From: Hyalangium minutum
Lineage (GTDB): Bacteria; Myxococcota; Myxococcia; Myxococcales; Myxococcaceae
Assembly: GCF_000737315.1 (NCBI RefSeq)
Contig: NZ_JMCB01000026.1
Span: 1 to 64,000, forward strand
Direction of reading: 5' to 3'
Length of the DNA: 64,000 bases
The translations under genes were made by a program, and so were the position numbers. This document shows, one piece after another, positions 35,201 through 61,400 of this stretch (position 1 is its first letter; each line of letters opens with the position of its first letter). The notes beneath the pieces were generated by a model. It searched no databases and was not told where the DNA came from. It saw only the letters and a program-made list of their open reading frames with translations.

Positions 35201-36616
35201 TCACGGAACCGGGGGAACATGAACGACCTGTATAGGGAGGTTAGCCCCCTTAAACATCTTCGTTAGTGCCCCTGCGAGCTTCTGCTCAGCGACGATCCAC
35301 CGGATGGGCATCCCCTGCGCCACGTTGATCTGGCGCTGCGCCTGCGCCAATAGCTTGTCGCTTCCTTTGAAGATCGGCAGAAAATCCAACTGCTGGCTGA
35401 TCCACTGCGCGTAACCGGGGCCCTTGACCTCGATCAGAACACCTTGGTCGAAGCCATCAAAGTCCGCCTCCTCGCTCCCGGACTTGACGCAGTAGGCGTA
35501 GCCCTTCGGCGCCCCTGTCACCTGGGATTGATAGGTCCGGGCGCTCTCGGACATGAACTCGTTCGCCTGAACCCACTCTCCCGGTCCACCTGGGCTGGGC
35601 GGCGCAGTTCGACCGCCAGTGCTATCTCCCGCCGCCATGGCCACGGCGTTAGGGGCCAACACGACCGCAGCCCCCTCAGCGCTCAACGCCACTGACTCCA
35701 CTTGGGCCAGCGCGGGCGCAGTGAAGCGAATACGGAGTTGAGTCTCGGCCACCACCGCAGCCTGACTGGCCCCTGGCAGCGATGGCAGTTTGGCCGCCAT
35801 GCCCGGCGCCGTATTTCCCAGCGCCACCGTCGCCAGCATCACGAAGGTCCGGGCCGCCTTCTCCCCCATCGTGTTCCCGAACTTCTCTCCCGAGGCGGCG
35901 ATGGCGTCAAAGGTGGTGGCTTGATCCACTTCCTTCATCAGCACCCACCACCCGTCGATCAGCCGCCACACTGTGTCCCACCCCAGGTACGCCATGGCCC
36001 CCACGGTCAGCAACGCAGCGACTCCCTTGCTCACGGGCTCGGGCAGCGTCAGCAAGATGGCGTACATGGTCAGCCCCCCGACGACCGTGGCAACCAACGC
36101 CTGGGGGTTCACCGTTCGCGCCAGTTCCTCCTTCATGGCTCCCAGCACCTTGCTGTGGGCGATCGCCATGGCCAGCGCGTACCGAGCATCCCCATCCAGA
36201 AAGGGCCTATCCACCAGAAGGCGCAGGCAATCCCCGCCTCCCCACTTCTCCTCGCACCACAGCAGATAGCGGCGCTTCAGTTCCTCGTCTTCGGGCAACA
36301 GTCTCAGGTTTCGCGGGCTGTCCGGCTCCGCAGCGATGAGCCGCTGGCTCCGGCTCTCGTACCGAAACCAACCGCTTCGCTCGGGCACTCCGAAGACCTG
36401 CCGAGCGTGTTCCAGGGGGCGATCCACCGCCCGCAGCCGCTGGGCATGCTCCGCCATGGCCTTTTTGAACTGCTCCTCGCGCAGTTGCACAGGCTCCACG
36501 TCGCGGCGCGGAACATGGGCGCGGGGTTCGCCTTGGCCTGTGTCCAAACGGAGGACCTTGGGTGAGGCGCTGCACCCCGAGAGAAAAGCGACCAGCAGCA
36601 GCGCTGCGCGCGGCAT
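35201..36616 (-). CDS. sitA: Lipoprotein toxin with Tox-REase-5 domain (SitA5-like)
   Basis: LSG-C lipobox; C-terminal PGEW...MS..A..YQ..VTG.P...AY...DFDGF..GVLIEVKGPGY...QA.RQ...PIRWIVAE. Confidence 0.88.
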   Translation of the reverse strand: MPRAALLLVAFLSGCSASPKVLRLDTGQGEPRAHVPRRDVEPVQLREEQFKKAMAEHAQRLRAVDRPLEHARQVFGVPERSGWFRYESRSQRLIAAEPDSPRNLRLLPEDEELKRRYLLWCEEKWGGGDCLRLLVDRPFLDGDARYALAMAIAHSKVLGAMKEELARTVNPQALVATVVGGLTMYAILLTLPEPVSKGVAALLTVGAMAYLGWDTVWRLIDGWWVLMKEVDQATTFDAIAASGEKFGNTMGEKAARTFVMLATVALGNTAPGMAAKLPSLPGASQAAVVAETQLRIRFTAPALAQVESVALSAEGAAVVLAPNAVAMAAGDSTGGRTAPPSPGGPGEWVQANEFMSESARTYQSQVTGAPKGYAYCVKSGSEEADFDGFDQGVLIEVKGPGYAQWISQQLDFLPIFKGSDKLLAQAQRQINVAQGMPIRWIVAEQKLAGALTKMFKGANLPIQVVHVPPVP

Positions 36617-36649
36617 ACGAAGCCTCCTGAGCATTCCTAAATGGTAGAG

Positions 36650-39028: not shown

Positions 39029-40627
39029 CTACCGGCCTCCCGCCTTCACCGTCGCGCGCAACGCGGCCTCCGCTGCTCGCAGCCTCGGATCCTGCGGAGC
39101 CACGCGCCGGGCCTCCTCCAGCCGCGCCAGCGCCCGCTCGGTGTCCCCCCGGGCCAGCTCGCACCGCACGCCCGCCTCCAGCGCTCCCGTCTCCGAGGGC
39201 CCATACACCCGCGCCTCCTCCGCCGCGTGGCAGCCCTCCTCCACGTGGCCCGACTCGAGGAACGCCCGCGCCAGCTCCACCCGCGTCGCCACCTGCGAGG
39301 GCGCCAGCCGCACGGCCTCGCGCAGCGGCTCCACCGCCTCCGCCGGCCGCCCCCACCGCCTCAGCGCCGAGCCCAGCTGCGCCAGCGGCTCGCTCGCCCC
39401 CGGCACGAGCAGCGCCCGCGCCCGCGCCTCGCGCAACATCGACGGCTCCTCCAGCCGCAGCTCCGCCACCATCCGCTCCACCACCCGCCTATACCGGGGA
39501 AAGCGCCCAGGCCACGTGAACACGAGCTGGTACACGAACTCCCCGCGCGGCACGAACAGCGCTCGCAGGTGCGTCACCCCGTCCGCGCCCTGCAGCTCCG
39601 CCTGCACCTCCTGCGCGGGACCACCGCTCACCCACGCGGGCCTCGGCCCCCGCACCTTCACAGGCCGACCCTCGGGGAGCACCGCCTCGGCGGCCAGCGC
39701 CGACTCCTGAAAGTGCACCGCCTGCAGCCCGCCGTCCCCGGGCTCGCCGGTCTGGATGGCCTCCGCCACGAAGGTGGCGCGCCCCAGCCCCGGCAACCCA
39801 TTGGAGAAGGCCAGCCGCCCGAGCCGATCCGCCCCCTGGCGCCAGCTCGACGGCATCGCCACCGACACACCGAACACGTCATCCCGCTCCACGCGCCACG
39901 TCGAGCGCCCGAGCACCCCCAACCCCGCCACCACCACCGCCACCGCCACCACGCTCCCGGCGCGCAGCCACTCCGCGCTCCTCGGCTCGCCCGCCGTCAG
40001 CCTCCTGGGCACCACGAAGAGCCCCACCAGCAGCCCCGAGCAGAACCCACCCAGGTGCCCTGCGTTGTCCACGCCCACCGACGTCCACCCCATCCACAGG
40101 AACACGAGCACCGTGGGCAGCACGCCCTCCCCTGCCATCCGCCGCGCCATCGGCGACAACACCGCGCGGTACCGGCGCCCCAGCACAATGAGCGCCCCCA
40201 CGCAGCCGTACGCCATGCCCGAGGCGCCCACGCTCACCTCCTCGGCCCACAAGAGAGAGCTCGTCATCGTCGCCAGCCCCGCCGCCACCAGCAGCGCCGC
40301 GTACTCGAGCCGTCGCCACGCTCCCTCCAGCACCGAGCCAGCCGCCACCAGCACCAGCAGGTTGAGCCCCAGGTGCGCCGCGTCCCGATGCAGGAAGTTC
40401 GCGGTCAGCAGCCGCCAGGACTCTCCCGCCTCCGTCATCAGCGGCCCCACCTTCGCTCCAAAGCGGACCATCGCATCCACATCGAGCGGACCCGCCGCGG
40501 CCGTCCTCACGTAGACGGCCAGCTGCACCCCCACCAGCCCCAGCGTCACCCACGGCAACCGCCCGAGCGGCCCTCGGGACTCGGGCGCTGATCGCGCGTC
40601 TTCGGAGCCGGGCGGAGGCACACTCAT
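39029..40627 (-). CDS. Rhomboid intramembrane serine protease with C-terminal TPR region
   Basis: WRLLTANFLH, HLGLN, VGASG (catalytic Ser), NAGHLGG (catalytic His); TPR-like helices at the C-terminus. Confidence 0.92.
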   Translation of the reverse strand: MSVPPPGSEDARSAPESRGPLGRLPWVTLGLVGVQLAVYVRTAAAGPLDVDAMVRFGAKVGPLMTEAGESWRLLTANFLHRDAAHLGLNLLVLVAAGSVLEGAWRRLEYAALLVAAGLATMTSSLLWAEEVSVGASGMAYGCVGALIVLGRRYRAVLSPMARRMAGEGVLPTVLVFLWMGWTSVGVDNAGHLGGFCSGLLVGLFVVPRRLTAGEPRSAEWLRAGSVVAVAVVVAGLGVLGRSTWRVERDDVFGVSVAMPSSWRQGADRLGRLAFSNGLPGLGRATFVAEAIQTGEPGDGGLQAVHFQESALAAEAVLPEGRPVKVRGPRPAWVSGGPAQEVQAELQGADGVTHLRALFVPRGEFVYQLVFTWPGRFPRYRRVVERMVAELRLEEPSMLREARARALLVPGASEPLAQLGSALRRWGRPAEAVEPLREAVRLAPSQVATRVELARAFLESGHVEEGCHAAEEARVYGPSETGALEAGVRCELARGDTERALARLEEARRVAPQDPRLRAAEAALRATVKAGGR

Positions 40628-40800
40628 ACGGGTAGGTGATCCTCCTGCCGCCCTCTGAAGATTGCCTGATCGGCCACCTGTCCGATGGACAACGGTGCCG
40701 ACTTCCCCTCACTCGGTCTGAAAACCGCTGTCATTTTCGGGGGATGCATGCCTTGTAACGGTTCCGCCCCTTCTGCTATAGCTGTAAGCGGATCTGACCC

Positions 40801-42546
40801 GTGCTGAAGCTCATCATCGAAGACGACGAGGGGCGCAAGACCGTTGTTCCCTTCGTGCGCGAAGAGATCACGATCGGCCGTCAGGAAGGCAACACCATCC
40901 GCCTGACGGAACGAAACGTGTCCCGCCGCCACGCTCGCCTCATGCGCCAGAACGGGCATGTTGTGGTGGAGGATCTGGGCAGTTCCAACGGCACTCGCAT
41001 CAACGGCGAGCGCATCAGCGGCCAGTCGACCGTCAAGGACGGCGATCTGATCCAGATCGGTGACTACGATCTGGCGCTGCAGAGCGACGTGGCTGCCGCC
41101 GCGCGTCCTCAGCGCACCGTGACAGCCGAGCTCGCGCCGGAGGAGATGGAGTCCTCCGCCGCCGAGGCCGAGACGGAGGCCGAGTCGCCCATCGCGGAGC
41201 AGGGCGAGGGAGATGAGGAAGAGTCTCCCGCCCCGCCCACCGCCGAGCAGCGCCGACACTCCACCGCCATCATCAAGATGGACCAGGTGGAGGGCAACCG
41301 CGCCCGCAAGGTGCAGGATCTCGATGCCGAGGACGCGCCCCGCCTGGTGGTGCTCAGCTCCGAGTTCAAGGGCCAGGAGTACTCCTGCATCCGGACCGAG
41401 ATGAAGATCGGCCGGACGGAAGACAACGACATCGTCATCGACCACCGCTCGCTGTCGCGCACACACGCCAAGCTGGTGCGCGAGGAGAGCGGCGAGTGGC
41501 GCATCCTGGACATGCAGTCGGCCAACGGGATGACGGTCAACGGCGAGCCGTACGCCCAGTCCTCGCTGAACAACGGCGACACCATCGAGCTGGGCCACGT
41601 GAAGCTGCGCTTCATTGGCGCGGGCGAATCGGCCAGCGCGGTCAGCGCGGGTGGCCGGTCCAAGCTGCCCCTGGTTGCGGCGTTCGTGGCGCTCCTCCTC
41701 ATTGTGGGCGGCGCCGCCTTCTTCTTGCTCAAGCCGAGCAACCCGGGTCCCGTGCAGCCAACGCCGGGCCCCGTGGCGCAGCCTCCGAATCCCGACCCGG
41801 AGCCCACCGACACCGCCGCCGCGGATCCGGCGAAGCGGCTGGCCGAGCGCATCCAGGAGGCGCAGAAGTACTTCGACGACAACAACCTGGAGCGGGCCGA
41901 GGACGCTCTGAACAACACCCGGAACCCGGACGGCACCTGGCCCCCCGAGGCGCAGAAGCTGGCCGGGCAGATCGCCGACGAGCGCAAGGCCGGTGACATG
42001 GTCGCCGAGGCCAAGCGCGCCTTCGAGGATCAGCGCTACGACGAGGCGGAGAAGCTGCTGAAGGAGGCCAAGGACTCCACCATCTTCGGCGTGGAGCGGG
42101 ATCAGCTGCTCAACCGCATCGAGGAGGCGCGCAAGGCGGCTGCCGCCAAGCCGGAGACGGGCACCCCGCCCGCGCCGGTGGCCACGCCCACCCCCACGCC
42201 CCCGCCCGCGGCGACGCCTACGCCTACGCCCAAGCCTCCTCCGACTCAGCAGGCGGCCGTCAACCGCGAGGAAGAGGCGGCCACCGCGCGGGAAGACGCT
42301 AGGAAGCTGATCATCAAAAAGCAGTTCCCAGAAGCGCGCAACCGGGCTTCCCGGTGCCTCGAGCTGACGCCGGCCGACGCCGACTGCCAGCTGCTCAAGG
42401 GCCTGAGCTACGCCCACGAGAACCAGTGGACCGTCGCCACTCCCTTCCTCAAGCGCTTCCTGGAGCTGGCACCGGACCACAAGCTCGCACCGAAGATCCG
42501 GGACAGTCTCAAGCGCCTGGAAGAGACAGACAACTCAGGCAAGTAA
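40801..42546 (+). CDS. Double-FHA-domain transmembrane protein with TPR-like C-terminus
   Basis: IGRQEGN...VSRRHA...DLGSSNGT and IGRTEDN...LSRTHA...DMQSANG; TM segment; Pro/Thr linkers; helical repeats. Confidence 0.9.
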   Translation: MLKLIIEDDEGRKTVVPFVREEITIGRQEGNTIRLTERNVSRRHARLMRQNGHVVVEDLGSSNGTRINGERISGQSTVKDGDLIQIGDYDLALQSDVAAAARPQRTVTAELAPEEMESSAAEAETEAESPIAEQGEGDEEESPAPPTAEQRRHSTAIIKMDQVEGNRARKVQDLDAEDAPRLVVLSSEFKGQEYSCIRTEMKIGRTEDNDIVIDHRSLSRTHAKLVREESGEWRILDMQSANGMTVNGEPYAQSSLNNGDTIELGHVKLRFIGAGESASAVSAGGRSKLPLVAAFVALLLIVGGAAFFLLKPSNPGPVQPTPGPVAQPPNPDPEPTDTAAADPAKRLAERIQEAQKYFDDNNLERAEDALNNTRNPDGTWPPEAQKLAGQIADERKAGDMVAEAKRAFEDQRYDEAEKLLKEAKDSTIFGVERDQLLNRIEEARKAAAAKPETGTPPAPVATPTPTPPPAATPTPTPKPPPTQQAAVNREEEAATAREDARKLIIKKQFPEARNRASRCLELTPADADCQLLKGLSYAHENQWTVATPFLKRFLELAPDHKLAPKIRDSLKRLEETDNSGK

Positions 42547-45753: not shown

Positions 45754-46134
45754 TTGAAGCGCAACGAGACAGGCGGCACCGGGACGGTGGTGGATCTCCA
45801 GGGAGCTCGGCGTGAGCGGAGGCTGGACCTCTATCGCGCGCGGCTCGCGGATCGCATGGCGGACAACCGCGCGATGCTGGAGACGCTGTACAAGGGTGGC
45901 ACCCTCTTCTCTCCCGAGGGCACCCGCCAGGGCCGTGCCCTGCTCAAGGCCCGCCAGCTGCTGCAGCGCGTCAACACCCTTGTGGAGCTGCTGTCCGGTG
46001 AGGGAGTGACGCCTCCGCCGCGCCTGCCCGCCCGGGTTGAGGAAGTCTACGAGGAGCTGGACACGCTGCTCGCCCGGAGCGACGCGCTGTCCGGCCGGGA
46101 TGGGGCCAGCGTGGCCCGCCTTCCCCGCAGCTAG
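45754..46134 (+). CDS. Hypothetical helical protein
   Basis: 126-aa ORF with strong GC3 bias and TTG start; no family recognised. Confidence 0.65.
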   Translation: MKRNETGGTGTVVDLQGARRERRLDLYRARLADRMADNRAMLETLYKGGTLFSPEGTRQGRALLKARQLLQRVNTLVELLSGEGVTPPPRLPARVEEVYEELDTLLARSDALSGRDGASVARLPRS

Positions 46135-46273
46135 CGAAGCGCTTCACGTGGGCGAACCGCCCCCTATACCCCTGGCTCCGGGGGAAGGGGGCCCACTCGA
46201 AGCGGTTGGCGTAAGCTACCGGCTCGCCGGTGCCCCAGCGGACTCCCCCCACTGGCGTGGCCTCGAGAATTTC

Positions 46274-47584
46274 ATGCAGACGCCTGCCCCTCCTGGGGGG
46301 CTGTTCAAGAGCCCTGCAGGACCGCACGTGGTGCTCTCGGTGGTCTTCGTCGCGGTCTACCCCATGGACATCGTCATCCTGGGCCGCGCAGATCGGCACA
46401 CGCTGGTGCTCCGGTGCGTCTGGGCCGTCATCCACGCGGCCTATGCCTTCTGGGCCCACTGCGCCCCCGCGCGCTGGTATCGCCCGTGGAGCCTGCTCAA
46501 CAGCCTGGCCGACACCCTCTTCTTCCTGGGGCTCATTCACCTCACGGGCGGCGCCGCGAGCCCCTACTTCCCCCTGCTGGTCAGCACCCCCATCCTCCTG
46601 GCGCAGGTCTACCCCGTCCATCTGGTGGCCAACCTCCTGGTCGGAGCCGTGACAGGAGGGGGTGCCCTGCTCATGATGCAGGGCGCGGGCCGCTCTTGGA
46701 TCGACGCGCTCTTCTGGTGCTTCCTGTGCGTGGGCGCCGCGGTGCTTGGACTGTACGTGGCGCACCAGACCCGGCGAGTCATCGCGGCGGAGGAGCGCGC
46801 CAGCGTCGAGCAGGCCCGGCGCGAGGCCATCGAGCGGGTGGCGAGGCAGGAGTTCACCCGCGCCCGATCCGAGAAGCTGGCCACACTCGGGAGGCTGGCG
46901 GCCAACGTGCTGCACGAGCTCAACAACCCGCTGGCGTTCGTGCGCGTCAACCTCGACTTCCTCCGGCAGGAGCTGCGCGCCCTGCCTCCGGAAGACACCC
47001 AACCCCTGATGGAGGCGCTCGAGGACACTCACACCGGCGTCGAGCGCATCCGGCAGATCGCCGCGGACCTGAAGGGCTTCTCCCGCATGGACGAGGAGGG
47101 CCCTGACCGCTGCGCTCTGGCGGACGTCGTGCCGAGCACCCTGCGCATCGCCTCGCTGCGGCTCAAGCACGTGGAGCAGGTGCGGGTGGTTCTCCCCGAG
47201 AACCTGCCCGAGGTGTACGCCAGCCCTCAGCGCCTGGCCCAGGTGCTGCTCAACCTCCTGGTGAACGCGGGGGATGCGCTCGCGGAGCGGAAGGAGGGCG
47301 CCGAGGTGCTGCTCACCGCGAGGCACGAGCACGGCCACATCACCCTGCTGGTGGAGGACAACGGCCCGGGCATTCCCCCGCACGTCCTGCCCCGTCTCTT
47401 CGAGCCCTTCTTCACGACGAAGGGGCCGGAGCTGGGAACCGGCCTGGGCCTGGCCCTGTCTCGCGAGTTGATCGAGAAGTTCCACGGCTCGCTGACCGCG
47501 GAGAACCGGCCCGAGGGCGGCGCGTGCATGCGCCTGGTGCTCCAGGTCTGGTCCCCCGCCCCAGAACGCGCCCTCCCCGTCTGA
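46274..47584 (+). CDS. Membrane sensor histidine kinase (orphan)
   Basis: TM segments; LHELNNPL, QVLLNLLVNA, EDNGPGI, FEPFFTTK, GTGLGL. Confidence 0.92.
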   Translation: MQTPAPPGGLFKSPAGPHVVLSVVFVAVYPMDIVILGRADRHTLVLRCVWAVIHAAYAFWAHCAPARWYRPWSLLNSLADTLFFLGLIHLTGGAASPYFPLLVSTPILLAQVYPVHLVANLLVGAVTGGGALLMMQGAGRSWIDALFWCFLCVGAAVLGLYVAHQTRRVIAAEERASVEQARREAIERVARQEFTRARSEKLATLGRLAANVLHELNNPLAFVRVNLDFLRQELRALPPEDTQPLMEALEDTHTGVERIRQIAADLKGFSRMDEEGPDRCALADVVPSTLRIASLRLKHVEQVRVVLPENLPEVYASPQRLAQVLLNLLVNAGDALAERKEGAEVLLTARHEHGHITLLVEDNGPGIPPHVLPRLFEPFFTTKGPELGTGLGLALSRELIEKFHGSLTAENRPEGGACMRLVLQVWSPAPERALPV

Positions 47585-47853
47585 GTCACTTCGCACCTCC
47601 CGCGGAGTCCGACACGCCGGAAGTCAGGACGACACGTCAGCGGCGTGTCCCCGGCACGCCGGCTGCTCGCTCAGTCAGCCGACAGGCATGGGCTTTGCTG
47701 AACCGTCGCGGCCTAGCCCATGGGTTCTCGTTGTTGGCGGTCGTCATCTGGAGCTGCAGCGGGGCCGAGGGAGAGTCAGGCAGCTTCGTGAGATGGGTCC
47801 CATGCCCGCCGGGCCCACCACAGGCTCTTCGATGGCGACGGTACGGAAACGGC

Positions 47854-49086
47854 TCAGGGCATCTCGGTCTGGCCCTGGCGCCGCAGGAACGTGGGGATGT
47901 CGAACTGATCCTCGTCCATCGGCAGCGCGGCATCCTTCACCACCGTGGTGCGCGGAGGCTGCGTGATGGCCTTGTTCTCCGTGGAGGACATGGCGCGGGC
48001 GCCGGCCTTGGCGGGCACCAGGCTGGCCACCTCCTCGCGCGCCGCGGTGAGCACCGAGGGCGACGGGGTGCGGACCAGCGGCACCGGCGTGACAGGCACC
48101 GCCGCCACCACGCGCTGCGGCTGCCGGGCATCCCGGTGCACGAAGCCCGTGGCGATGATGGTGATCTTCACCTCGTCCTGGATCTCCTCGTCGATCAGCG
48201 AGCCGAAGATGATCTCCGCCTCGCTGTCTGCGGCGTCATGCACCAGCGTGAGGGCCTCGTTGACCTCCTGCAGGGTCATGTCGCGGCCGCCGGTGATGTT
48301 GATGAGCAGGCCCGTGGCGCCATCGATGGAGACATCCTCCAGCAGCGGGCTGGAGATGGCCTGCTGCATGGCGCTGAGCGCGCGGGTGGCGCCCGAGGCC
48401 CGGCCGGTGCCCATGAGCGCCAGGCCCTTGTCGCTCATGATGGTCTTCACATCCGCGAAGTCCACGTTGATGTAGCCGTGGTACTGGATGAGGTCCGAGA
48501 TGCCTTGCACGGCGTTGAGCAGCACCTCGTCGGCGCGCTTGAACGTCTCCAGCAGCGGCATGGGCTCGTTGCTCAGGGTGAGCAGGCGCTGGTTGGGGAT
48601 GGTGATGAGCGTGTCCACCGCGGCCTTCAGCTCCACCAGGCCCTGCTCGGCCTGCTTGCGGCGCTTGTTGCCCTCGAAGAGGAACGGCTTGGTCACCACA
48701 CCCACAGTGAGGCAGCCCAGGCTCTTGGCGATGTCCGCGATGATGGGCGCGGCGCCCGTGCCGGTGCCGCCACCCATACCGGCAGTGACAAACACCATGT
48801 CCGCGCCCTCGAGCACGGCGGCGATCTGATCCTTGGACTCCAGGGCGGCCTCGCGGCCCATCTCCGGGTTGGCACCGGCCCCCAGGCCCTTGGTCAACGT
48901 CTGTCCGAGCTGCAGCCGCGTCGGGGACTTGTTGGCCGCCAGGGCCTGGACGTCGGTGTTCGCGGCGATGAAGTCGACCCGTTCCAGCTTGGCCAGGATC
49001 ATCGTGTTGACCGCGTTGCACCCCGCCCCGCCCACGCCGACCACACGGATCTTCGCGGCCTGCTTGTTCTGCTCGAACTGGTCCAT
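47854..49086 (-). CDS. ftsZ: Cell division protein FtsZ
   Basis: [36 protein letters not shown]; C-terminal DIPTFLRR. Confidence 0.98.
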
Positions 49087-49197
49087 GGTGATCCTTTCAG
49101 CGGAAGTCGCGCACCTTTTGATCGCGAGCCTCCCAGGTCACCCATCATCAGCAAGTCCGGATCTTTGGCAAGTATTCAGCTACCGGCCTGTAGCGCG

Positions 49198-49222
49198 CTG
49201 TCACATCACCGAGTGGTGACAG
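49198..49222. promoter_or_regulatory. Palindrome upstream of ftsZ (possible operator)
   Basis: CTGTCAC-N11-GTGACAG, about 110 nt upstream of the ftsZ ATG. Confidence 0.3.
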
Positions 49223-49428: not shown

Positions 49429-52400
49429 TCAAGGCTGCTCGATCTCGATCACCTTGGGCTTCACCTTGACGATGGTGAAGTCGACGCGGCGGTTCTGCTC
49501 GCGGCCCTTGTTGGTCTTGTTGGAGGCAATGGGCTTGGCCTCGCCGTAGCCCACGGCCTCGAGCCGGCTGGCCTCGACGCCCTCCAGCACGAGCCGGTCC
49601 CGGACGGCTTCGGCGCGGTTGCGGGAGAGGACCAGGTTGGCGCCGTCCTCGCCCTTGTCATCGGTGTGGCCCTCCACGCGGACCAGCTCGATCTGCGGGT
49701 TGGCCTTGAGCACCTGAGACACCTGGCGCAGCAGGGGGAAGGACTTGGGGAGGATGGTGTTCTTGTTGTTGAGGAAGAAGATCTTATCGAGGATGACGAC
49801 CTTCTCGCCCGCCACGAGCACCTTCACCTTGCCCTTGTCCGGGCAGCCGTCCTCGTCCTTCACGCCGTTGATGGTCTCCGGCTCCGTGGGGCACTTGTCG
49901 TCCGCGTCCGCGACGCCGTCGTGGTCATTGTCCGGGTCCGGGCAGCCGTCCTCGTCCTGGAACCCGTCCTTGTCCTCGGCGGCCTGAGGGCAGCGATCCT
50001 TGTCGTCCGTGATTCCATCGCCATCCGTGTCGGCGGGAGGCAGCACGTCCGGGCAGCCATCCTCGTCCTGGAAGCCGTTGAGCGTCTCCGGCTCGTTGGG
50101 GCACTTGTCGGCCGTGTCCAGGATGCCGTCGTTGTCGTTGTCCGGGTCCGCGCAGCCGTCCTCGTCCTGGAAGCCATCCATGTCCTCGGGGCCGAGGGCG
50201 CAGACGGGCTTGGACGGGGGGATGACCTCTACCTTGGTCTTGATGTTGGGGTCAGCCACCACCTCGGGCGGGGGCACGGGCTTGGCCTCCACCTTCGGCG
50301 CGGGCTGCTCAGAGCGGGAGGTGGGAGCCACGTAGGCCAGGCCCGCGAACACGCGGATGCCCGGCGTGCCGTAGCCCTGCGAGAGGCCGGGGCCACCGCC
50401 CAGGTGCGCGGCGAGCGAGTCCGTGACGCGGTACTTCACCGTGGCCAACAGCTCCAGCGGCTTCTCCTCGCTGCCCTTCTGCCCCAGGCCCATCGCGCCC
50501 ACCAGGGTGGCGCCCACGGAGAGCCCGCGGCCGCTCACCTGGAAGGGAACCTCGCCGCCCAGGCCGTAGGTCAGCTCGTTGCCGACGACCAGCCCGCGCA
50601 GTTCCTGCTCGGAGCGGAGGTTCATGCCCACGTTGGCCAGCACGCGAATGCCCGTGCTGCTGTTCCACTCGCCGAGCAGCTTCGGGCGGACGGAGAAGCC
50701 GCCGCCGAGGAAGTTCTCGCCCCCCGTGGGCAGGTGCAGAGGCAGTGCCGCACCCAGGGAGAGCCCGCCTGCGGAGAACAGGTTCGCCTTCGGCACCAGG
50801 CGCAGGTCGCCCAGGCCCGTCTTGCCCGCGCCCTCGCTGAAGTCCGGCACGCCTTCAGGGGCGGACTCGGAGCTCTGCGAGGTGATGGGGATGGCCAGGC
50901 CCAGCTCGAAGCGATCGAGGAAGGCGATGGCTGCCATCACGTCCACCGTGAGCTGGCTCGACACCAGCTTGTAGACGACGGCGTCCTTGCGCGGATCCAG
51001 AACGGACAGCGGATCCGTGGCGTAGTTCACTGACAGGCCCGCGTTCCAGCCCAGGTGCTTGTTCACCTTCGGGCTGTGCAGGCCCAGCACGTCGTAGGCG
51101 CCCGGCCCCGGCTTGAACTGCTGCACGTCGATCTTCGTGGACGCGGTGCTGGAGGTTGTCTGCGCGTGCGCAGGAGCCGTCAGGAAGACGGCCAGCACGC
51201 CCAGCAGCCCCCAGGCCCCCGCGGCCGAGGCCTTCACCGCCGCCCGGCGACGCCGCAGCAGCGGCAGGCCGAGCAGCAGCAGCAGCGGCACGAAGCTGGT
51301 GCCCGTCGAGGCGCAACCGCCGCCCACGAACAGGAAGTCGTCGGTGTCATCGAGCGGGTTGGTTTTGCCCTCAACCTCCTCACCATCGGTCGCACCACCG
51401 CCGTCGGTGTCGGGGTTGCAAGGATCGGTCTCGTCCGCATCCCTGTGGCCGTCGTGGTTCTTATCCTCGTCGCCGTCCTTGAGGCCGTCGTCGTCGGAAT
51501 CCTCGTCGAGCGGAGAAGTACAGGTCCCATTCTCGATCTCGTCGGGGATGCCGTCGCCGTCGGTGTCGTTACCCTGGACGACCCGGACGGTCACCGTGGC
51601 GGTATCCGTGCCGCCATTGCCATCCGAGATCGTGTACTCGAAGGTCACGTCGCCCGTGAAACCCTCGGCCGGAGTGAACTGCACCGCCGAGCCATCCGTG
51701 GCCACCTTCACTGTGCCGCTCGGGGCCGACGAGGTCACCGCCGTCACCGTCAGCGTCTCGCCCGTATCCGGAGCGATCGAGTCGTTGGCCAGCACGTCCA
51801 GCCGGTTGCCCGTCGAGTTGAAGGGCACCGTGAACATGTCATCCAGGGCGACGGGATCATCGTTGACCGGGGTCACCGTGACAGTGACCGTGGCCGTGTC
51901 CGTGCCGCCGTTGCCATCATCGATCGTGTACGTGAACGTCACGTCGCCGTTGAAGTTAGGCGTCGGCGTGAAGGTCACCACGCCGTTGTCCAGCTTCACC
52001 GTGCCGCCCGAGGTCGGCTGCGTCACCGACGTCACCGTCAGCGTCTCGCCCGTGTCCGGCGCGAACGTGTCGTTGTCGAGCACGGCCAGCACGTTGTCCA
52101 CGCTGTCCTCGGCCACCGAGAACGTGTCGTCCGCCGCGTCCGGCGGGTTGTTGGGCGGCAGGCCCACGCGCACCCTCACCGAGGCCGTGTCCGTCCCGCC
52201 GTTGCCATCCGAGATGGTGTAGTCGAACGTCGTGATCCCGCTGAAGCCTGCGGCCGGCGTGAAGCTCACCACGCCGCCCGTCAGCGTCACCGTGCCGTTG
52301 GCCGGCTGGGTCACCGCCGTCACCGTCAGCGTCTCGCCCGTGTCCGGCGCGAACGTGTCGTTGGCCAGCACGTCCAGCACCGTGGCGCCACTGTCCGCGG

Positions 52401-55400
52401 CCACGTTGAAGACGTCATCCACCGCATCCGGGTTGTCGTTGACTGGCGTGACCGTGACCGCGACGGCGGCCGTGTCGTTGCCACCGTTGCCGTCCGAGAT
52501 GGAGTAGTCGAACGTCACCGTGCCGTTGAAGTTGGCCGTCGGCGTGAAGGTCACCACGCCGCCCGTCAGCGTCACCGTGCCGCCCGTGGCCGGCTGGGTC
52601 ACCGCCGTCACCGTCAGCGTCTCCCCCGCATCCGGGAACGCCGTGTCGTTGGCCAGCACGTCCAGCACGTTGTCCGTGCTGTCCTCGGCCACCGAGAACG
52701 TGTCGTTCACCGCATCCGGCGGGTTGTTGGGTGCCATGCCCACGCGCACCGCGACGGTGGCGGTGTCAGTGCCGCCATTGCCGTCCGAGAGGGTGTACGT
52801 GAACGTCGTGGTCCCCACGAAGCCCGCGGCCGGCGTGAAGCTCACCACTCCACCGGAGAGCGTCACCGTGCCGCTTGGGGCCGGCTGAGTCACCGCCGTC
52901 ACCGTCAGCGTCTCGCCCACGTCCGGCGCGAACGTGTCGTTGGCCAGCACATCCAGCACCGTGGCACCACTGTCTTGCGCCACGGAGAAGGAGTCGTTCA
53001 CCGCGTCGGGCGGATCATTGACCGGGGTCACCGTGACAGTGACCGTGGCCGTGTCCGTGCCGTTGTTGCCGTCATTCACCGTGTACGTGAACGTCGTGGT
53101 GCCGTTGAAGTTGGCCGTCGGCGTGAAGAGCACCGTGCCGGTGTTGGTCAGCGTCACCGAGCCACCGGTGGCCGGCTGAGTCACCGCCGTCACCGCGAGC
53201 GTCTCCCCCACATCCGGCGTGGTCGTGTCGTTGGCCAACACGTCCAGCGGGTTGTCCGTGCTGTCCTCGGCCACCGAGAACGTGTCGTTGCGAGCATCCG
53301 GCGGGTTGTTCGTCTCCGTGACGACGACCGTGACGGTGGCCGTGGCCGTACCGCCGTTGCCGTCCTCGATCGTGTACGAGAAGGACACCGTCCCGGCGAA
53401 GCCCGTCGTCGGCTGGAAGCGGACCAAGCCACCGCTCAGCGACACCGAGCCACCCGTGGCCGGCTGCGTCACCGCCGTCACCGTCAGCGTCTCGCCCACG
53501 TCCGGCTCCGTGCTGTCGTTGGCCAGCACATTGAGCACCGTGGCCGGGCTGTTGCGGCTCACCGTGAAGCTGTCGTCCCGGGCCGTGGGCGGGTTGTTCG
53601 AACCGGCCACCCTCACCGTGACGGTCGCCGTGTCCGTGCCGCCGTTGCCGTCCGAGATGGTGTACGTGAACGTCGTGGTCCCGTTGAAGCCCGCGGCCGG
53701 CGTGAAGCTCACCACGCCGCCCGTCAGCGTCACCGTACCGTTGGCCGGCTGAGTCACCGCCGTCACCGTCAGCGTCTCGCCCACGTCCGGCGCAATCCGG
53801 TCGTTGGCGAGCACATCCAGCACGCGGGGCGGGCTGTTCACCACCACCTCGAAGCTGTCATCCACCGCATCCGGGTTGTCGTTGACCGGCGTGACGGTGA
53901 CCGTGACCCGCGCGGAGTCCGTACCGTTGTTGCCATCCGAGAGGGTGTACGTGAACGTCGTGGTGCCGTTGAAGTTGGGCGCCGGCGTGAAGCTCACCAC
54001 GCCGCCCGTCAGCGTCACCGTGCCGTGGGCCGGCTGGGACACCGCCGTCACCGTCAGCGTCTCGCCCGTGTCCGGCGCGAACGTGTCGTTGGCCAGCACG
54101 TCGAACGTCGTGGCGCCGCTGTCCTCGTCCACCGTGAAGCTGTCCTCCACGGCATCCGGCGGGTTGTTCGTGCCGAACACCGACACGGTCACCGTGGCCG
54201 TGTCCGTGCCGCCGTTGCCATCCGAGAGGGTGTACGTGAACGTCGTGACGCCGCTGTAGCCAGGCGTCGGCGTGAAGCGCACCACCCCGTCGATCAGCGT
54301 CACCGAGCCGTTGGCCGACTGGGTGATCTGCGTGATGGTCAGCGTCTCGGGCGCATCCGGCAGGTACGTGTCGTTGAGCAGCACGTCCAGCGGCGTGTTC
54401 GAGCTGTCCACCGCCACCATGAAGCTGTCGTTGACGGCATCCGGCGGATCGTTCGCCGGGTCTACGGTCATCGTCACCGTCGCCGAGTCCGTGCCACCGT
54501 GGCCATCGGAGATCGTATACGTGAACGTCGTGGTGCCGAAGAAGTTGGGCGCCGGAGCGAAGCGCACGAGCCCCCCGCTGAGCGTCACCGTGCCGTTGGC
54601 CGGCTGAGTCACCGCCGTCACCGTCAGCGTCTCACCCGTGTCGGGCAACGCCGTGTCGTTGCCCAGCACGTTCACCACCGTGAGCGGATAGTCCTCGGTC
54701 GTCGAGAAGCTGTCGTCGTTCGCGGTGGGCGGATCGTTGACCGGCGTCACCGTCACCGTGACGACCGCCGTGTCGCTGGCAGTGCCGCCGTCGGAGAGCG
54801 TGTACGTGAACGTCACCGTGCCGTCGAAGTTGGACAGCGGCGTGAACCGCACCACTCCGCCCGACAGCGTCACCGTGCCGCTGGACGGCTGTGTCACCGC
54901 GGTGATGACCGGCGTGTCGCACTGGTCGTTGGCCGTCACGTTCAGCGCTGTGGAGCCGCTGTCCTCGGCCACCGTGAAGGTGTCATCCACGGCGTCGCAG
55001 TCGGGCACCGCCGTCACGGTCACGGTCACGATGGCCGTGTCCGTGCCGCCGTTGCCATCCGAGATGGCGTAGCTGAACGTCACCGTGCCGTTGTAGTTGG
55101 GCGCGGGCGTGAAGCTGACGTTGCTCGACGTGAACGTCACCGAGCCACCCGTGGCCGGCTGAGTCACCGCCGTGATGGTCAGCGTCTCGCCCGTGTCCGG
55201 AGCCGTCGTATCGTTGGCCAGCACGTCCAGCACCGTGGCGCCGCTGTCCTCGGCCACTGTGTAGTTGTCGTCGTTGGCCACCGGCGGGCGGTTCGCCCCG
55301 GAGACCGTCACCGTCACCGTGGCCGTGTCCGTGCCGCCGTTGCCGTCGGAGATCGTGTACGTGAACGTCGTGGTGCCCGAGAAGCCTGCGGCCGGAGTGA

Positions 55401-58400
55401 AGCTCACGCCCGTGGCCGTGAAGGTCACCGTGCCATTGGCCGGCTGAGTCACCGCGGTGATGGTCAGCGTCTCATTCGTGTCCGGCGCGATCGTGTCGTT
55501 GAACAGCACGTCCAGCACGCGGGCGGAGCTGTTCACCGCCACCGTGAAGTTGTCGTCGCGGGCATCCGGGTTGTCGTTCACCGGCGTCACCGTGACGGTC
55601 ACCGTGGCCGTGTCCGTGCCGCCGTTGCCGTCCGAGATCGTATACGTGAACGTCGTGGTGCCGTTGAAGTTGGGTGCCGGCGTGAAGCTGACGCTGGTGG
55701 TCGTGTTGGCCACCGCCGTGCCGCCCACCGCCGGCTGGGTCACCGCCGTCACCGTCAGCGTCTCGCCCGTGTCCGGCGCGAACGTGTCGTTGGCCAGCAC
55801 GTTGACCGTCGTGGCCAGGCTGTCCTCGGCCACCGTGAGCACGTCATCCACGGCATCCGGAGGATCGTTGACCGGCGTCACCGTCACCGTGACGGTGGCC
55901 GTATCCGTGCCGCCGTTGCCGTCGGACACCGTGTACGTGAACATCACCGTGCCATTGAAGTTGGGCGCCGGTGTGAAGCGAACCACGCCGCCCGACAACG
56001 TCACCGCGCCGCCCGTGGCCGGCTGGGTCACCGCCGTCACCGTCAGCGTCTCACCCGTGTCCGGGCCAAGCGTGTCGTTGGCCAGCACGCTCAGCACCGC
56101 GGGTAGGCTGTCCTCGGCCACCGAGAAGGTGTCGTCGTTGGCCTCGGGCGGATCGTTCACCGGCGTCACCGTCACCGTGACGGTCGCCGTGGCCGTACCG
56201 CCGTTGCCATCCGAGACGGTGTACGTGAACGAGACGGTGCCGTTGAAGTTGGCCGCAGGCGTGAACGTCACCCCGGTGGCCGTGAAGGTCACCGAGCCAC
56301 TGGCCGGCGGAGTCACCGCCGTCACCGACAGGGTCTCTCCGATGTCCGGCGCCGTGGTGTCGTTGGCCAGCACGTTGAAGGTCGAGGGACCGCTGTCCTC
56401 GGCCACCGTGTAGCTGTCGTCGTTGGCCACCGGCGGGCGGTTGTTGCTGCCCACCAGGACCGTCACCGTGGCCGTTGCCGTGCCGCCGTTGCCATCCGAG
56501 ATCCGGTACGTGAACGTCGTCACACCCACGAAGCCCGCAGACGGAGTGAAGGTGACGTTGGCTCCCGTAAAGCTCACCGTGCCGTTGGCCGGCTGAGTCA
56601 CCGCGATGATGGTCAGCGTCTCGCCCACGTCCGGCACGATCGTGTCGTTGGCCAGCACGTTGATCACCGTGGGGCCGCTGTCCGCGGGCACCTGGGAGGT
56701 GTCGTTGTTGGCCGTGGGGTTGTCGTTCACCGGCGTCACGTTCACCGTCACCGTGGCCGTGTCGTTGCCCCCGTTGCCGTCGTTGATGCTGTAGGTGAAC
56801 GAGGTGGTCCCGAAGAAGTTGGCCGCGGGCGTGAACGTCACCCCGGTGGCCGTGAAGGTCACCGAGCCGTTGGCCGGCTGCGTCACCGCCGTGATGGTCA
56901 GCGTCTCGTTGTCGTCCGGCAGCGACGAGTCGTTGAAGAGCACGTCCATCGCCGTGGCGCCGCTGTCCTCGGTCACCGTGAAGGTGTCGTCGCTGGCCGT
57001 CGGGTCGTCGTTCGACGGCGTCACCGTGACGGTGACCGTCGCAGAGTCCGTGCCGCCGTTGCCGTCCGAGATCCGGTACGTGAACGAGGTGGTGCCGTTG
57101 AAGTTCGCGTCCGGGGTGAAGTTCAGGGTCGCGCCCGAGAAGCTCACCGAGCCACCGGCCGGCTGCGTCGCCGAGCTGATGGTCAGCGTCTCACCCGTGT
57201 CTGGCGCGATCGTGTCGTTGGCCAGCACATTGAGCACCGTGGAGCCGCTGTCCTCGGCCACCGTGAAGCTGTCGTCGTTGGCGTCCGGCGGGTCGTTCAC
57301 CGGCGTCACCGTCACCAGCACTTGGGCCGTGTCCGTGGAGGTGCCGTCGGACACCGTGTACGAGAACGTCGTGGTGCCGTTGAAGTTGGCCGTCGGTGTG
57401 AACTCGACCACGTTGCCCGTGAGGGTCACCGTGCCGTTGGCCGGCTGCGTCACCGCCGTGATGGTCAGCGTCTCGCCCACATCCGGGGCCGTGGTGTCGT
57501 TGGCCAGCACGTCCAGGGTCGTGGCCACGATGTCCTCGGGCACCGTGAAGGTGTCGTCGCTGGCCGTGGGAGGATCGTTGACCGGCGTCACCGTCACCGT
57601 GACGGTCGCCGTATCCGTGGTGGTGCCGTCGGACACCGTGTACGAGAACGTCGAGGTCCCGTTGAAGCCCGGCGTCGGCGTGAAGCTCACCACGCCGCCC
57701 GCCAGCGTCACCGTGCCACCCACCACCGGCTGGGTCACCGCCGTCACCGAGAGCGTCTCGCCCGTGTCCGGCGCCGTGGTGTCGTTGGCCAGCACGTCGA
57801 GCGGAGTGGCCGGGCTGCTCTCAGCCACCACGAAGGTGTCGTCCACCGCGTCCGGAGGATCGTTGACCGGCGTCACCGTCACCGTGACGGTCGCCGTATC
57901 CGTGCCGCCGTTGCCGTCGGACACCGTGTACGTGAACGTCGTGGTGCCATTGAAGTTGGGCGCGGGCGTGAAGCTGACGTTGAACTGCGTCATCGTCACC
58001 GTGCCGCCCGTGGGCTGGGTGACGGCGGTGATGGTCAGCGTCTCGGTGGTCTCCGGCCCCGTCGAGTCGTTGGCCAGCACGTTGAACACCGTGGAGGCGC
58101 TGTCCTCGCCCACCGTGAAGCTGTCATCCACGGCATCCGGCGGATCGTTCACCGGCGTCACGTTCACCGTCACCGAGGCCGTGTCCGTGCCGCCCCGGCC
58201 GTCCGAGATGGTGTACGAGAACGTCACCACGCCGTTGAAGTTCGGGCCCGGCGTAAACGTCACGCCCGTGGCCGTGAAGGTCACCGTGCCGTTGGCCGGC
58301 TGGGTCACCGCTGTCACCGACAGGGTCTCGCCCACGTCCGGCGCGAACGTGTCGTTGGCCAGCACGTCCAACACCGTGGGACCGCTGTCCTCGTCCACCG

Positions 58401-61400
58401 TGAAGCTGTCGTCCACCGCATCCGGCGGATCGTTCTCGTCGTTGACGATGACAGTCACCGTGGCCGTGGCCGTCCCGCCGTTGCCATCCGAGATGGTGTA
58501 CGTGAACGTCGTGGTCCCCACGAAAGCGTTGTTCGGGGTGAAGGTCACGCTGGAGCCGGTAAAGGACACCGAGCCGCCCGTGGCGGGCTGAGTCACCGTG
58601 GTGATGGTGAGCGTCTCGCCCGTGTCGGGCACTGCCGTGTCGTTGGCCAGCACGTTCAGCGCCGTGGGGCCGCTGTTCTGGCCCACCGTGAAGCTGTCGT
58701 TGTTGGCCGTGGGCGGATCGTTCACCGGCGTCACCGTCACCGTCACCGTGGCCGTGTCGCTGCCACCGTTGCCGTCCGAGAGGGTGTACGTGAACGTCGT
58801 GGTGCCGTTGAAGTTGGCCGTCGGCGTGAAGCTGACGTTGGAGGCCGTGTGGGTCACCGTGCCGCCCGCGGGCTGGGTGACGGAGGTGATGGTCAGCGTC
58901 TCGCCCACGTCCGGGGCGAACGTGTCGTTGGCCAGCACGTTGAACGTCGTGGCCGCGCTGTCCTCGGCCACCGTGTAGCTGTCGTTCACCGCGTCCGGCG
59001 GGTCATTGACCGGCGTCACCGTCACCGTGACGGTCGCCGTGGCCGTGCCGCCGTTGCCGTCCGAGATCCGATACGTGAACGAGGTGGTGCCGTTGAAGTT
59101 GGCCGCCGGCGTGAAGCTGACGTTGGAGGCCGTGAAGGTCACCGTGCCGTTGGCCGGCTGAGTCACCGAGGTGATGGTCAGCGTCTCGCCCGTGTCCGGC
59201 GCGATCGAGTCGTTGGCCAGCACGTTGAAGGCCGTGGCCGTGCTGTCCTCGGCCACCGTGAAGGTGTCGTCGGTGGCCGTCGGCGGGTCATTGACCGGCG
59301 TCACCGTCACCGTCACCGTGGCCGTGTCGTAGCTCCCGTTGCCATCCGTGATGGTGTACGTGAACGTCGTGGTACCGTTGAAGTTCGCGGCCGGCGTGAA
59401 ACGAACGCCGGTGGCCGAGAAGGTCGTCGAGCCGTTGGCCGGCTGGGTCACCGCCGTCACCGTGAGCGTCTCGCCCACGTCCGGAGCAAACGTGTCGTTG
59501 GCGAGCACGTCGAACGTCGTGGCGCCGCTGTCCTCGAGCACGGTGTAGCTGTCGTTCACCGCGTCCGGCGGCTCGTTGACCGGCGTCACCGTCACCGTGA
59601 CGGTCGCCGTGGCCGTGCCGCCATTGCCATCCGAAATGGTGTACGTGAACGTCGTGGTGCCGAAGTAATCGGGCGCTGGCGTGAAGGTGACGTTGCCGGC
59701 CGTGAAGGTCACCGTGCCGTTGGCCGGCTGAGTCACCGCCGTGATGGTCAGCGTCTCACCCAGGTCCCCGTTGGTCGTGTCGTTGGCGAGCACGTCGAAC
59801 GTCGTGGCGCCGCTGTCCTCGGCCACCGTGAAGCTGTCGTTGGTGGCAAGCGGCGGGTCATTGACCGGCGTCACCGTCACCGTGACGGTCGCCGTCGCCG
59901 TGCCGCCGCTGCTGTCCCTCACCGTATAGGTGAACGTCGTGGTGCCGTTGAAGTTGGGCGCGGGCATGAAGCGCACCACCCCACCGATGAGCGTCACCGT
60001 GCCATTGGCCGGCTGGGTCACCGCCGTGACCGACAGGGTCTCGCCCGTGTCCGGCGCAATCGAGTCGTTGGCCAGTACATCCACCATCGTGGCGCCGCTG
60101 TCCTCGGCCACCGTCAGCGTGTCGTTGTTGGCCGTGGGCGGATCGTTCACCGGATCCACCGTCACCGTGACGGTCGCCGTGTCCGTGCCACCGTTGCCGT
60201 CGGACGCCGTGTACGTGAACGTCGTGATGCCAAAGAAGTTGGCCGCCGGGGTGAAGAAGACGGTGTTGGCGTTGAAGGTCACCGTGCCGTTGGCCGGCTG
60301 GGTCACCGCCGTGATGGTCAGCGTCTCGCCGACGTCCGGCGCCGTGCTGTCGTTGACGAGCACGCTGAACGCATTGGCGGAGCTGTCCTCGAGCACCGCG
60401 TAGCTGTCGTCGTTGGCCGTGGGCGGATCGTTGACGGGCGTCACCGTCACCGTCACCACCGCCGTGTCGCTGCCGCCGTTGCCGTCGGACACCGTGTACG
60501 TGAACGTCATGGTGCCGTTGAAGCCCGTGGCCGGCGTGAAGCTCACCACCCCACCCGTCAGCGTCACCGTGCCGTTGGCCGGCTGGGTGACGGAGGTCAC
60601 GGTGAGCGTCTCTCCGATGTCCGGCGCCGTGGTGTCGTTGGCCAGCACGTCGAACGTCGTGGGCCCGCTGCTCTCGGCCACGGTGAAGCTGTCGTTCACC
60701 GCGTCCGGCGGATCGTTGACCGACGTGACGTTGACCGTCACGGTGGCCGTGTCGAAGAGGCCGTTGCCGTCCGTCACCGTGTACGTGAACGTCACCGTGC
60801 CGTTGAAGTTGGCCGTAGGCGTGAACCGGACATTCGAGGCGTTGAACGTCACCGAGCCGCCCGTGGCCGGCTGGGTCACTGCCGTCACCGACAGAGTCTC
60901 TCCGATGTCCGGCGCCGTGGTGTCGTTGGCCAGCACATCGAGCGTCGTGACCGGGCTGTCCTCGGGCACGGAGAAGACATCATCCACCGCATCCGGCGGC
61001 GCGTTGCCCGGCGTCACCGTGACCGTCACCGCGGCCGTGTCCTGGCCACCATTGCCGTCCGAGATGGTGTACGTGAACGAGGTGGTGCCCACGAAGTTGG
61101 CCGCGGGCGTGAAGCTGACGTTGGCGGCGGTGAACATCACCGTGCCGTTGGCCGGCTGGGTCACCGTCGTGATGGTGAGCGACTCGCCAAGGTCCGGCGC
61201 GAACGTATCGTTGGCCAGCACGTCAAACACCGTGGGCGGGCTGTTGCGAGCCACCGAGTAGCTGTCGTTGACGGCATCCGGCGGATCGTTCACCGGCGTC
61301 ACCGTCACCGTCACGGTGGCCGTCGCCGTGCCACCGTTGCCATCCGAGATGGTGTACGTGAACGTCGTGGTGCCGAAGAAGTTGGCCGCAGGCCGGAACG

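Follow-up and report, generated by a model that had tools for sequence, protein, structure and literature searches.

A giant adhesin, an internal MYXO-CTERM-type tag and a TraB-like barrel protein in one conserved reading frame next to ftsZ of Hyalangium minutum

A Giant Reading Frame Upstream of ftsZ

We analysed a stretch of 64,000 nucleotides from Hyalangium minutum (Myxococcota; RefSeq assembly GCF_000737315.1, contig NZ_JMCB01000026.1, positions 1 to 64,000 of the forward strand), which we refer to as the window. The minus strand of this stretch contains a giant open reading frame (ORF) that encodes a large adhesin, an internal sorting tag of the MYXO-CTERM type, a predicted second signal peptide and a TraB-like outer-membrane barrel protein. 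The gene located downstream of it is ftsZ. The features of this region are listed below; arrows in sequences mark predicted cleavage sites.

49429..63951, minus strand: giant ORF, listed as 4840 amino acids (aa), with the frame open past the window end
63967..64000, minus strand: end of a lipoprotein-type signal peptide, ...PLLLLGALSAC↓GGPDP, with the lipobox Cys at 63969..63967
51325..63966, minus strand: giant adhesin body, with a DUF11-like N-terminal domain, ~40 repeats and an acidic TSP3-like stretch
51244..51324, minus strand: internal MYXO-CTERM-type sorting tag (GGG-C, ASTGTS, helix FVPLLLLLGLPLL, RRRR)
51315..51313, minus strand: tag Cys, within GGG-C
51294..51256, minus strand: hydrophobic helix of the tag, FVPLLLLLGLPLL
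51255..51244, minus strand: RRRR cluster
51163..51255, minus strand: predicted second (internal) signal peptide, its n-region shared with the tag
51255..51232, minus strand: n-region, RRRRAAVK
51231..51163, minus strand: h- and c-regions, ASAAGAWGLLGVLAVFLTAPAHA
between 51163 and 51162, minus strand: predicted signal peptidase I site AHA↓Q, with the Gln at 51162
50329..51162, minus strand: TraB-like outer-membrane beta-barrel of roughly 12 long strands, FapF / COG4313 (Phenol_MetA_deg) type
49827..50202, minus strand: TSP3-type calcium-binding repeats (DxDxDGxxDxxDxCP), linking barrel and OmpA domain
49429..49826, minus strand: OmpA-like peptidoglycan-binding domain (PF00691, 76.2 bits) and stop codon
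49431..49429, minus strand: ORF stop codon, TGA
47854..49086, minus strand: ftsZ (Tubulin and FtsZ_C domains), 343 nt downstream of the giant ORF

The minus-strand frame reads ...DDTDDFLFVGGG-C-ASTGTS-FVPLLLLLGLPLL-RRRR-AAVK-ASAAGAWGLLGVLAVFLTAPAHA-QTTSSTASTKIDVQQFKPGPG... and contains zero stops, both in the translation and in the raw DNA. A preliminary description of this DNA had placed the Cys at 51313-51315, the RRRR cluster at 51244-51255 and an A-x-A site at ~51163 of an uninterrupted frame, and this is what we found. From 51900 to 50400, the GC content at codon position 3 is 0.75-1.00 in one single frame; because this third-position GC is continuous across the junction, the adhesin side and the barrel side are both coding in the same frame. 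The tag ends at residue 4233 of the >4840-aa ORF, and 607 residues are located beyond it. The MYXO-CTERM sequence is not at the extreme C-terminus here, which is the “internal MYXO-CTERM” configuration as described for protein MXAN_5598 of Myxococcus xanthus (see below).

The ORF start at 63951 is not real, as the same frame is open to base 63999, reading PLLLLGALSACGGPDPV. Because the frame is open to the window edge, the window cuts off the N-terminus of the adhesin and the true start codon is located beyond the edge. Lipobox N-termini are also present in the paralogs at loci L015, L016 and L018, and ordinary signal peptides in those at L009, L012 and L013. The mature adhesin may be lipid-anchored at both ends, through the N-terminal lipobox Cys and the C-terminal MYXO-CTERM Cys. 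The predicted products are a protein of ~4219 aa, from the lipobox Cys to the tag Cys, and one of 577 aa, from Q4264 to the end.

In 12 related loci (L001-L006, L010, L011, L014, L017, L020 and L023), the fused gene is followed by ftsZ. Because ftsZ is located directly downstream and synteny is shared, the window gene is the positional ortholog of MXAN_5598 of M. xanthus DK1622; this comparison is based on position and the published description, and the ftsA side is beyond the window. In the retrieved text of a 2025 mBio paper (PMC11980579), MXAN_5598 is described as a protein with an N-terminal large adhesin, an internal MYXO-CTERM and a C-terminal outer-membrane beta-barrel plus OmpA domain, whose gene adjoins ftsA and ftsZ. 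There it is likened to TraA plus TraB and regarded as a likely gene fusion, the traA and traB ORFs being known to overlap, and its N-terminal part is proposed to be processed and surface-anchored; MrtX is the myxosortase that cleaves MYXO-CTERM (PMC11980579, retrieved text). That text makes no mention of a second signal peptide or of signal peptidase for MXAN_5598 and contains no experiments on this protein, and we found no further details on it in the supplementary text retrieved for the same paper. MXAN_5598 has been detected in outer-membrane vesicles (PMC4158809).

Both the fusion architecture and the analogy with TraAB are, therefore, already published for the M. xanthus counterpart, so that the idea is not new. 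Added here are the spread and strictness of the fusion, the logic of a hairpin with shared arginines and an A-x-A site, and the finding that versions exist in both fused and split form, that the barrel has a fold of the FapF/COG4313 type and that the N-terminus carries a lipobox. The window gene and MXAN_5598 share the adhesin, internal MYXO-CTERM, barrel and OmpA domain in one ORF, and the position in the cell-division cluster beside ftsZ. They belong to different genera: the ftsZ-adjacent loci of Myxococcus (L004, L010 and L011) are 55-56% identical to the window barrel protein, whereas its nearest relatives are from Hyalangium (70-71% identity). Compared with MXAN_5598, the window adhesin is very long (~4200 aa), with ~40 tandem-95 repeats and a lipobox N-terminus.

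The Adhesin, the Sorting Tag and the Second Signal Peptide

The portion upstream of the second signal peptide's cleavage site comprises 4263 residues, and its repeats are of the tandem-95 / Big_9 / cadherin-like type. Pfam searches matched Big_9, Cadherin_5 and Cadherin_4, in 40 stretches each, and DUF11 at residues 53-174. An acidic TSP3-like calcium-binding stretch with DxDxDG motifs is located immediately ahead of the tag.

The tripartite MYXO-CTERM layout is present in the window as GGGC / FVPLLLLLGLPLL / RRRR. Two profile models, TIGR03382 and TIGR03901, both bear the name MYXO-CTERM. The window tag scores 20.2 bits against TIGR03382, above its cut-off of 15.85, and 19.0 bits against TIGR03901.2, slightly short of the cut-off of 20, so that the internal tag lies on opposite sides of the two cut-offs. 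Taken together, the sequence supports the view that the tag is MYXO-CTERM-like. There was no CPBP-family gene among the scanned ORFs, which cover part of the window.

The internal segment that follows the tag fits the layout of a Sec-type signal peptide, for which we used the criteria of a basic n-region, a hydrophobic h-region of 10-20 residues and small residues at positions -3 and -1: the three parts are RRRRAAVK / ASAAGAWGLLGVLAVFLT / APAHA↓Q. Moreover, when standalone members of the barrel family such as P0024 are aligned with the window protein, their real N-terminal signal peptides coincide with this second hydrophobic segment. When an 823-aa precursor was modelled by AlphaFold, the predicted local distance difference test score (pLDDT) was <50 throughout the stretch from tag to signal peptide; in the model, this stretch is treated as unstructured.

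The Barrel Protein Is a Paralog of TraB

The preliminary description had proposed a barrel, TSP3 repeats and an OmpA domain downstream of the junction, and all three are borne out by the Pfam match to OmpA and by structure prediction. AlphaFold2, run with 80 homologs, gave a model with a mean pLDDT of 87.7, in which long strands at residues 39-278 are followed by a linker and an OmpA-like domain. The OmpA part matches many OmpA, Pal and MotB models, and OmpA-like structures superimpose on it with a root-mean-square deviation of 1-2 A. In the TSP3 repeats, the D and C columns are invariant in the family.

Searched by itself, the barrel region has a single match, to the TraB model NF033763, with 101.5 bits over profile positions 13-309; positions 320-498 of the same profile are matched by the C-terminal part. 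The barrel also has a match to Pfam PF13557 (Phenol_MetA_deg). The whole barrel protein scores 286.9 bits against NF033763, for which the TraB cut-off is 700 bits; the protein is a TraB paralog and not TraB itself. The proposal of a TraA/TraB-like pair stands as far as colinearity with the TraB profile is concerned and falls short as regards identity with TraB (287 versus 700 bits).

The similarity to the TraA/TraB system concerns both the order of the genes and that of the domains. In both cases, a MYXO-CTERM surface protein is encoded immediately upstream of a protein with barrel, TSP3 repeats and OmpA domain, and the C-terminal protein of the window is colinear with the TraB hidden Markov model over profile positions 13-498 of 522. 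The order of signal peptide, beta-barrel, TSP3 repeats and OmpA-like domain is that of TraB (architecture according to PMC12045341). TraA and TraB are present in foci at a 1:1 ratio, and AlphaFold predicts a 1:1 complex of TraA and TraB, with the C-terminal head of TraA located on the TraB barrel; TraB trimers have been suggested (PMC12045341). In contrast to the window, where there is one frame, traA and traB form separate ORFs with an overlap of four bases (PMC3325183). In addition, TraA has a PA14-like variable domain and a Cys-rich stalk where the window adhesin has tandem-95 / cadherin-like repeats, and the tra locus contrasts with the ftsZ context in the window.

In a fold search, the barrel matched FapF (5o68) and a COG4313 protein (4rl8) with target-normalised TM-scores of 0.6-0.69. 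The best barrel matches are FapF, through which Pseudomonas secretes amyloid (PDB 5o65/5o67/5o68), and Pput2725, a channel of the COG4313 type (4rl8), with E ~1e-10 over ~270-300 columns, although the sequence identity to the window barrel is only 12-16%. Unlike the window protein, FapF and COG4313 proteins are without a TSP3 or OmpA extension and without a fused adhesin. Proteins of this kind form barrels of 12 strands in which an N-terminal segment acts as a plug. FapF is trimeric, which is reminiscent of the trimers suggested for TraB; a channel function for TraB-like barrels is putative.

The barrel opens with the conserved N-terminal motif IDVQQFKPGPG. Mature residues 11-40 (window ~51042..51132, minus strand; IDVQQFKPGPGAYDVLG), just past the predicted cleavage site, are the most conserved part of the family, and they are modelled with a pLDDT of 92-97 and almost without regular secondary structure. 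By analogy with the N-terminal segments of FapF and COG4313 proteins, these residues may sit inside the barrel as a plug.

For the C-terminal part, the fold search returned PDB 5wtl, with 39% identity over 245 columns (E = 2e-16). This structure and 5wtp represent the periplasmic part of Capnocytophaga gingivalis OmpA, which has the same order of TSP3 repeats followed by an OmpA-like domain. The similarity is limited to this periplasmic module, the barrel and everything upstream being unrelated.

The Fusion Is Conserved in Frame

We collected 80 loci that encode barrel-protein relatives and, starting from each match, followed its frame in the upstream direction. At 26 loci besides the window, one frame runs through the Gly-x-Cys tag, helix, Arg cluster, second hydrophobic segment and barrel; the check proposed earlier, whether orthologs retain the frame over the junction, thus has a positive outcome. 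The fusion is carried by at least five named genera (Hyalangium, Myxococcus, Corallococcus, Archangium and Vitiosangium). Fused orthologs adjacent to ftsZ are present in Hyalangium (L001, L003), Myxococcus (L004, L010, L011), Corallococcus (L014, L017, L023) and metagenome-assembled genomes (MAGs; L002, L005, L020); in one further Myxococcus locus (L008) the fusion is present, and its contig stops short of where ftsZ would be checked. Fused paralogs are located elsewhere in the genome in Archangium (L009, L013), Vitiosangium (L012, L015), Hyalangium (L016) and at L018 and L022. Finally, fused loci were found in MAGs of distant Myxococcota (L033, L036, L038, L042, L052, L059, L069, L079), one of which is labelled Haliangiales.

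The junction alignment and the loop statistics cover 25 junctions. In these, the Cys and the Ala at position -1 are invariant, and the flanking Gly is at least 90% conserved. The loop between the two hydrophobic segments ranges from 3 to 16 residues, with 14 different lengths, and is always in frame; it contains 2-9 Arg/Lys and zero Asp/Glu. The second hydrophobic segment (h plus c) measures 17-29 residues, of which the last three are A-x-A in 24 junctions and V-x-A in one. TIGR03901 matched 21 of the tags at E<=0.01, and TIGR03382 matched 15.

In each of the 25 junctions, the second hydrophobic segment follows immediately on the Arg cluster. This arrangement, together with the lack of any acidic residue in the loops, fits a dual role of the cluster, as stop-transfer signal of the tag and as n-region of the second signal peptide. 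At some loci, e.g., L069 (...LARRRRRTWALAPVIAALFVLAPAAHA↓Q) and L059 (...LFRRRRAAAVVAGLALLLAAAPARA↓D), the loop is almost purely Arg cluster, which supports the idea that the arginines serve both helices. At L059, the open frame extends just 148 codons upstream, which may be due to a frameshift or an assembly break.

Not all members of the family are fused. In standalone members, the place of the second segment is taken by an ordinary N-terminal signal peptide, e.g., in P0024 (MHLPDF...RRVTRLAAPLLLVASATASA↓QPAASQAIDVQQYKP), and the standalone copy of M. virescens is located in an unrelated regulatory context. Two-gene versions are present at L044, L045, L049, L078 and L080, where an upstream MYXO-CTERM-like gene with its own stop is followed by a barrel gene. 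We also considered the ~600-aa “OmpA family” proteins of Myxococcus as split orthologs; they are instead standalone paralogs encoded between response regulator and FecR/CHASE2 genes. In a neighbour-joining tree of 69 barrel proteins, built without support values and without TraB sequences, fused and unfused forms are interleaved, which suggests more than one fusion or fission event in the history of the family.

Among the annotated proteins, P0006 starts inside the tag helix (MVWLAALVLLAMPALRR...) and P0014 at an internal Met in the acidic region. Public gene calls often truncate such ORFs, so that fused genes are under-counted in protein databases.

Proposed Processing of the Fusion Protein

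The reading that we consider probable is that the giant ORF is a conserved translational fusion, orthologous to MXAN_5598, of a TraA-like and a TraB-like partner, whose product forms a hairpin that is cut by signal peptidase I and myxosortase. Export of the ~4200-aa adhesin via Sec would start with the N-terminal lipoprotein signal peptide. The MYXO-CTERM helix would then halt transfer and leave the Arg cluster in the cytoplasm, and the second hydrophobic segment would re-insert with its N-terminus in and its C-terminus out, which would give a helical hairpin with a basic loop of 3-16 residues. Cleavage by signal peptidase I at AHA↓Q would free the 577-aa barrel protein to the periplasm, after which the beta-barrel assembly machinery (BAM) would insert the barrel in the outer membrane and the OmpA domain would bind peptidoglycan. 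Such a cut would be topologically required, because an outer-membrane barrel cannot stay joined to an inner-membrane hairpin. The tag Cys would be lipidated, and cleavage after it by the myxosortase MrtX would release the adhesin, which type II secretion would then carry to the surface; either of the two cuts could come first.

The outcome would be two proteins per translation event in an obligate 1:1 ratio, which, by analogy with TraA/TraB, may form a complex at the surface. A 1:1 output, as proposed earlier, would match the 1:1 ratio measured for TraA and TraB (PMC12045341). The term “self-splitting” used in the preliminary description is not appropriate, since nothing points to autoproteolysis and the cuts would be made by host signal peptidase I and myxosortase.

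A literature search for bacterial polyproteins with internal signal peptides gave nothing relevant. The cytochrome b/c1 precursor FbcH of Bradyrhizobium japonicum is a polyprotein in which a transmembrane segment is followed by an internal signal sequence, where signal peptidase cuts. As proposed for the window gene, one translation product of fbcH yields two membrane or periplasmic proteins at a fixed stoichiometry. The proteins are unrelated, and the model for the window adds a cut of the sortase type and products bound for the outer membrane and the surface.

Several points weigh against this processing scheme. First, the window tag falls just below the TIGR03901.2 cut-off. Second, the signal peptide was called by inspection and comparison, the A-x-A sites being chosen by eye. 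Third, both cleavages, in the window protein as well as in MXAN_5598, are events that we infer, and a role for a ~4200-aa, possibly doubly lipid-anchored protein as type II secretion substrate is putative. Fourth, an in-frame GTG (the Val in AAVKAS, 51237..51235) could start an independent precursor beginning with MKASAAG..., and a Met or GTG is present within or close to the first helix at several other loci; the barrel protein could thus additionally, or alternatively, arise by internal initiation.

Alternative Explanations

The last of these points leads to an alternative that we regard as improbable, i.e., two functional cistrons in one frame, with the barrel protein produced mainly by internal initiation at the GTG (51237..51235; MKASAAG...AHA↓Q). 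The read-through fusion would then be a tolerated relic of a lost stop, and myxosortase would remove the longer cytoplasmic/membrane tail of the adhesin. The window GTG is ideally placed for this, and at L012 and L013 (both MMRSRR...), L022 (MRRPRRR...) and L033 (MWRRR...) an ATG just ahead of the Arg cluster would give textbook signal peptides. Translational coupling of traA and traB through their four-base overlap (PMC3325183) provides a precedent, and the GTG is overlapped by cgg cgg tga as read in the +1 frame (51235..51240, ggcGGTGAag), which looks like a former GTGA stop/start overlap of the type reported for traA/traB and may be due to chance. However, GTG (Val) codons are common by chance at such a GC content, and neither a Shine-Dalgarno-like GGAGG ahead of the GTG nor a promoter-like site in 51000-52000 was found. 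The linker contains neither a start codon nor a ribosome-binding site whose position is conserved, and at L002, L020 and L052 the stretch from the Arg cluster to the hydrophobic core is devoid of ATG, GTG and TTG. Furthermore, a barrel gene with its own start should tolerate frame-breaking indels in the linker, of which there are 0 in 27 loci despite the 14 loop lengths. The lack of a conserved start, the loci without any start and the strict retention of the frame weaken the case for internal initiation.

Incomplete processing of the fusion protein is also quite improbable in our view. According to this explanation, only myxosortase or only signal peptidase cuts, and one of the products keeps the hairpin as a membrane anchor: for instance, the adhesin would stay in the inner membrane, or the barrel/OmpA protein would be a peptidoglycan binder tethered to the inner membrane. 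The retrieved text of PMC11980579 reports that MYXO-CTERM proteins partly reach the surface even without MrtX, so processing can be incomplete; the marginal score of the window tag against TIGR03901.2 points the same way, and for the fused family as a whole all processing is what we infer. On the other hand, the A-x-A site and a helix-breaking Pro at about -5/-6 are kept in most junctions, those of distant lineages included, which speaks for selection at the signal peptidase site, as the invariant Gly-x-Cys motif does at the sortase/lipidation site. A confidently predicted 12-strand barrel, moreover, needs a free periplasmic precursor for insertion by BAM, and MXAN_5598 is present in outer-membrane vesicles (PMC4158809).

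That two ordinary genes lost the stop between them, through an error in sequencing or assembly or through a recent mutation specific to the strain, is hardly credible and is refuted by the in-frame junction at 26 other loci and the continuous third-position GC: a one-base shift near ccggg would restore ...RRRRGRR-TGA overlapping the GTG, and related systems exist as two genes, but Hyalangium, Myxococcus, Corallococcus, Archangium and Vitiosangium genomes that were sequenced independently share the same fusion, as do many MAGs, and it has been published for MXAN_5598 of M. xanthus DK1622 (PMC11980579, retrieved text).

If the two-cut hairpin model is true, the window gene would be a clear case of a bacterial polyprotein split by enzymes of envelope biogenesis, and it would show how a cell can produce a surface adhesin and the adhesin's outer-membrane partner in a fixed ratio. 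TraA/TraB, which functions in kin recognition and membrane fusion, would then be one member of a broader set of modules of MYXO-CTERM protein plus TraB-like barrel, both fused and split. The conserved position at the side of ftsZ hints at a link between adhesion and division, which is testable in M. xanthus via MXAN_5598. A more far-reaching reading, speculative and unlikely, is that internal-tag fusions are a widespread class of Sec-dependent polyproteins in Myxococcota that were formed or split more than once. The hairpin cut by two host peptidases would enforce a 1:1 ratio of adhesin and FapF-like barrel, the barrel would act as a dock in the outer membrane dedicated to the adhesin, or even as a conduit for it, and TraAB would be the split version of a general two-partner surface display, linked here to the cell-division cluster.

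Other Sequences in the Window

A scan of 49000-52000 for promoters and terminators gave no match within the giant ORF and no terminator-like site after it. The sole sigma-70-like promoter match in this region is at 49144..49171 (minus strand; TTGCCA-16-GATGAT), within the 343 nt that separate the giant ORF from ftsZ.

Two ORFs of 541 and 618 aa, at 45971..47596 and 40624..42480 (both minus strand), have no Pfam match at E<=0.001; the true gene calls at these positions are uncertain, as overlapping ORFs of similar length are present on the opposite strand. The 532-aa protein encoded at 39029..40627 (minus strand) has an N-terminal rhomboid intramembrane-protease domain fused to tetratricopeptide (TPR) repeats, and the 477-aa ORF at 35201..36634 (minus strand) ends in a Tox-REase-5 nuclease toxin domain, which is typical of polymorphic toxins. 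An 850-aa ORF at 1571..4123 (minus strand) contains nine EGF-like domains and FG-GAP repeats, an extracellular architecture that is eukaryote-like. Finally, the plus-strand gene at 11370..13760 encodes a pyridoxal phosphate (PLP)-dependent decarboxylase, similar to tyrosine decarboxylases, that is fused to a C-terminal pair of EF-hands.

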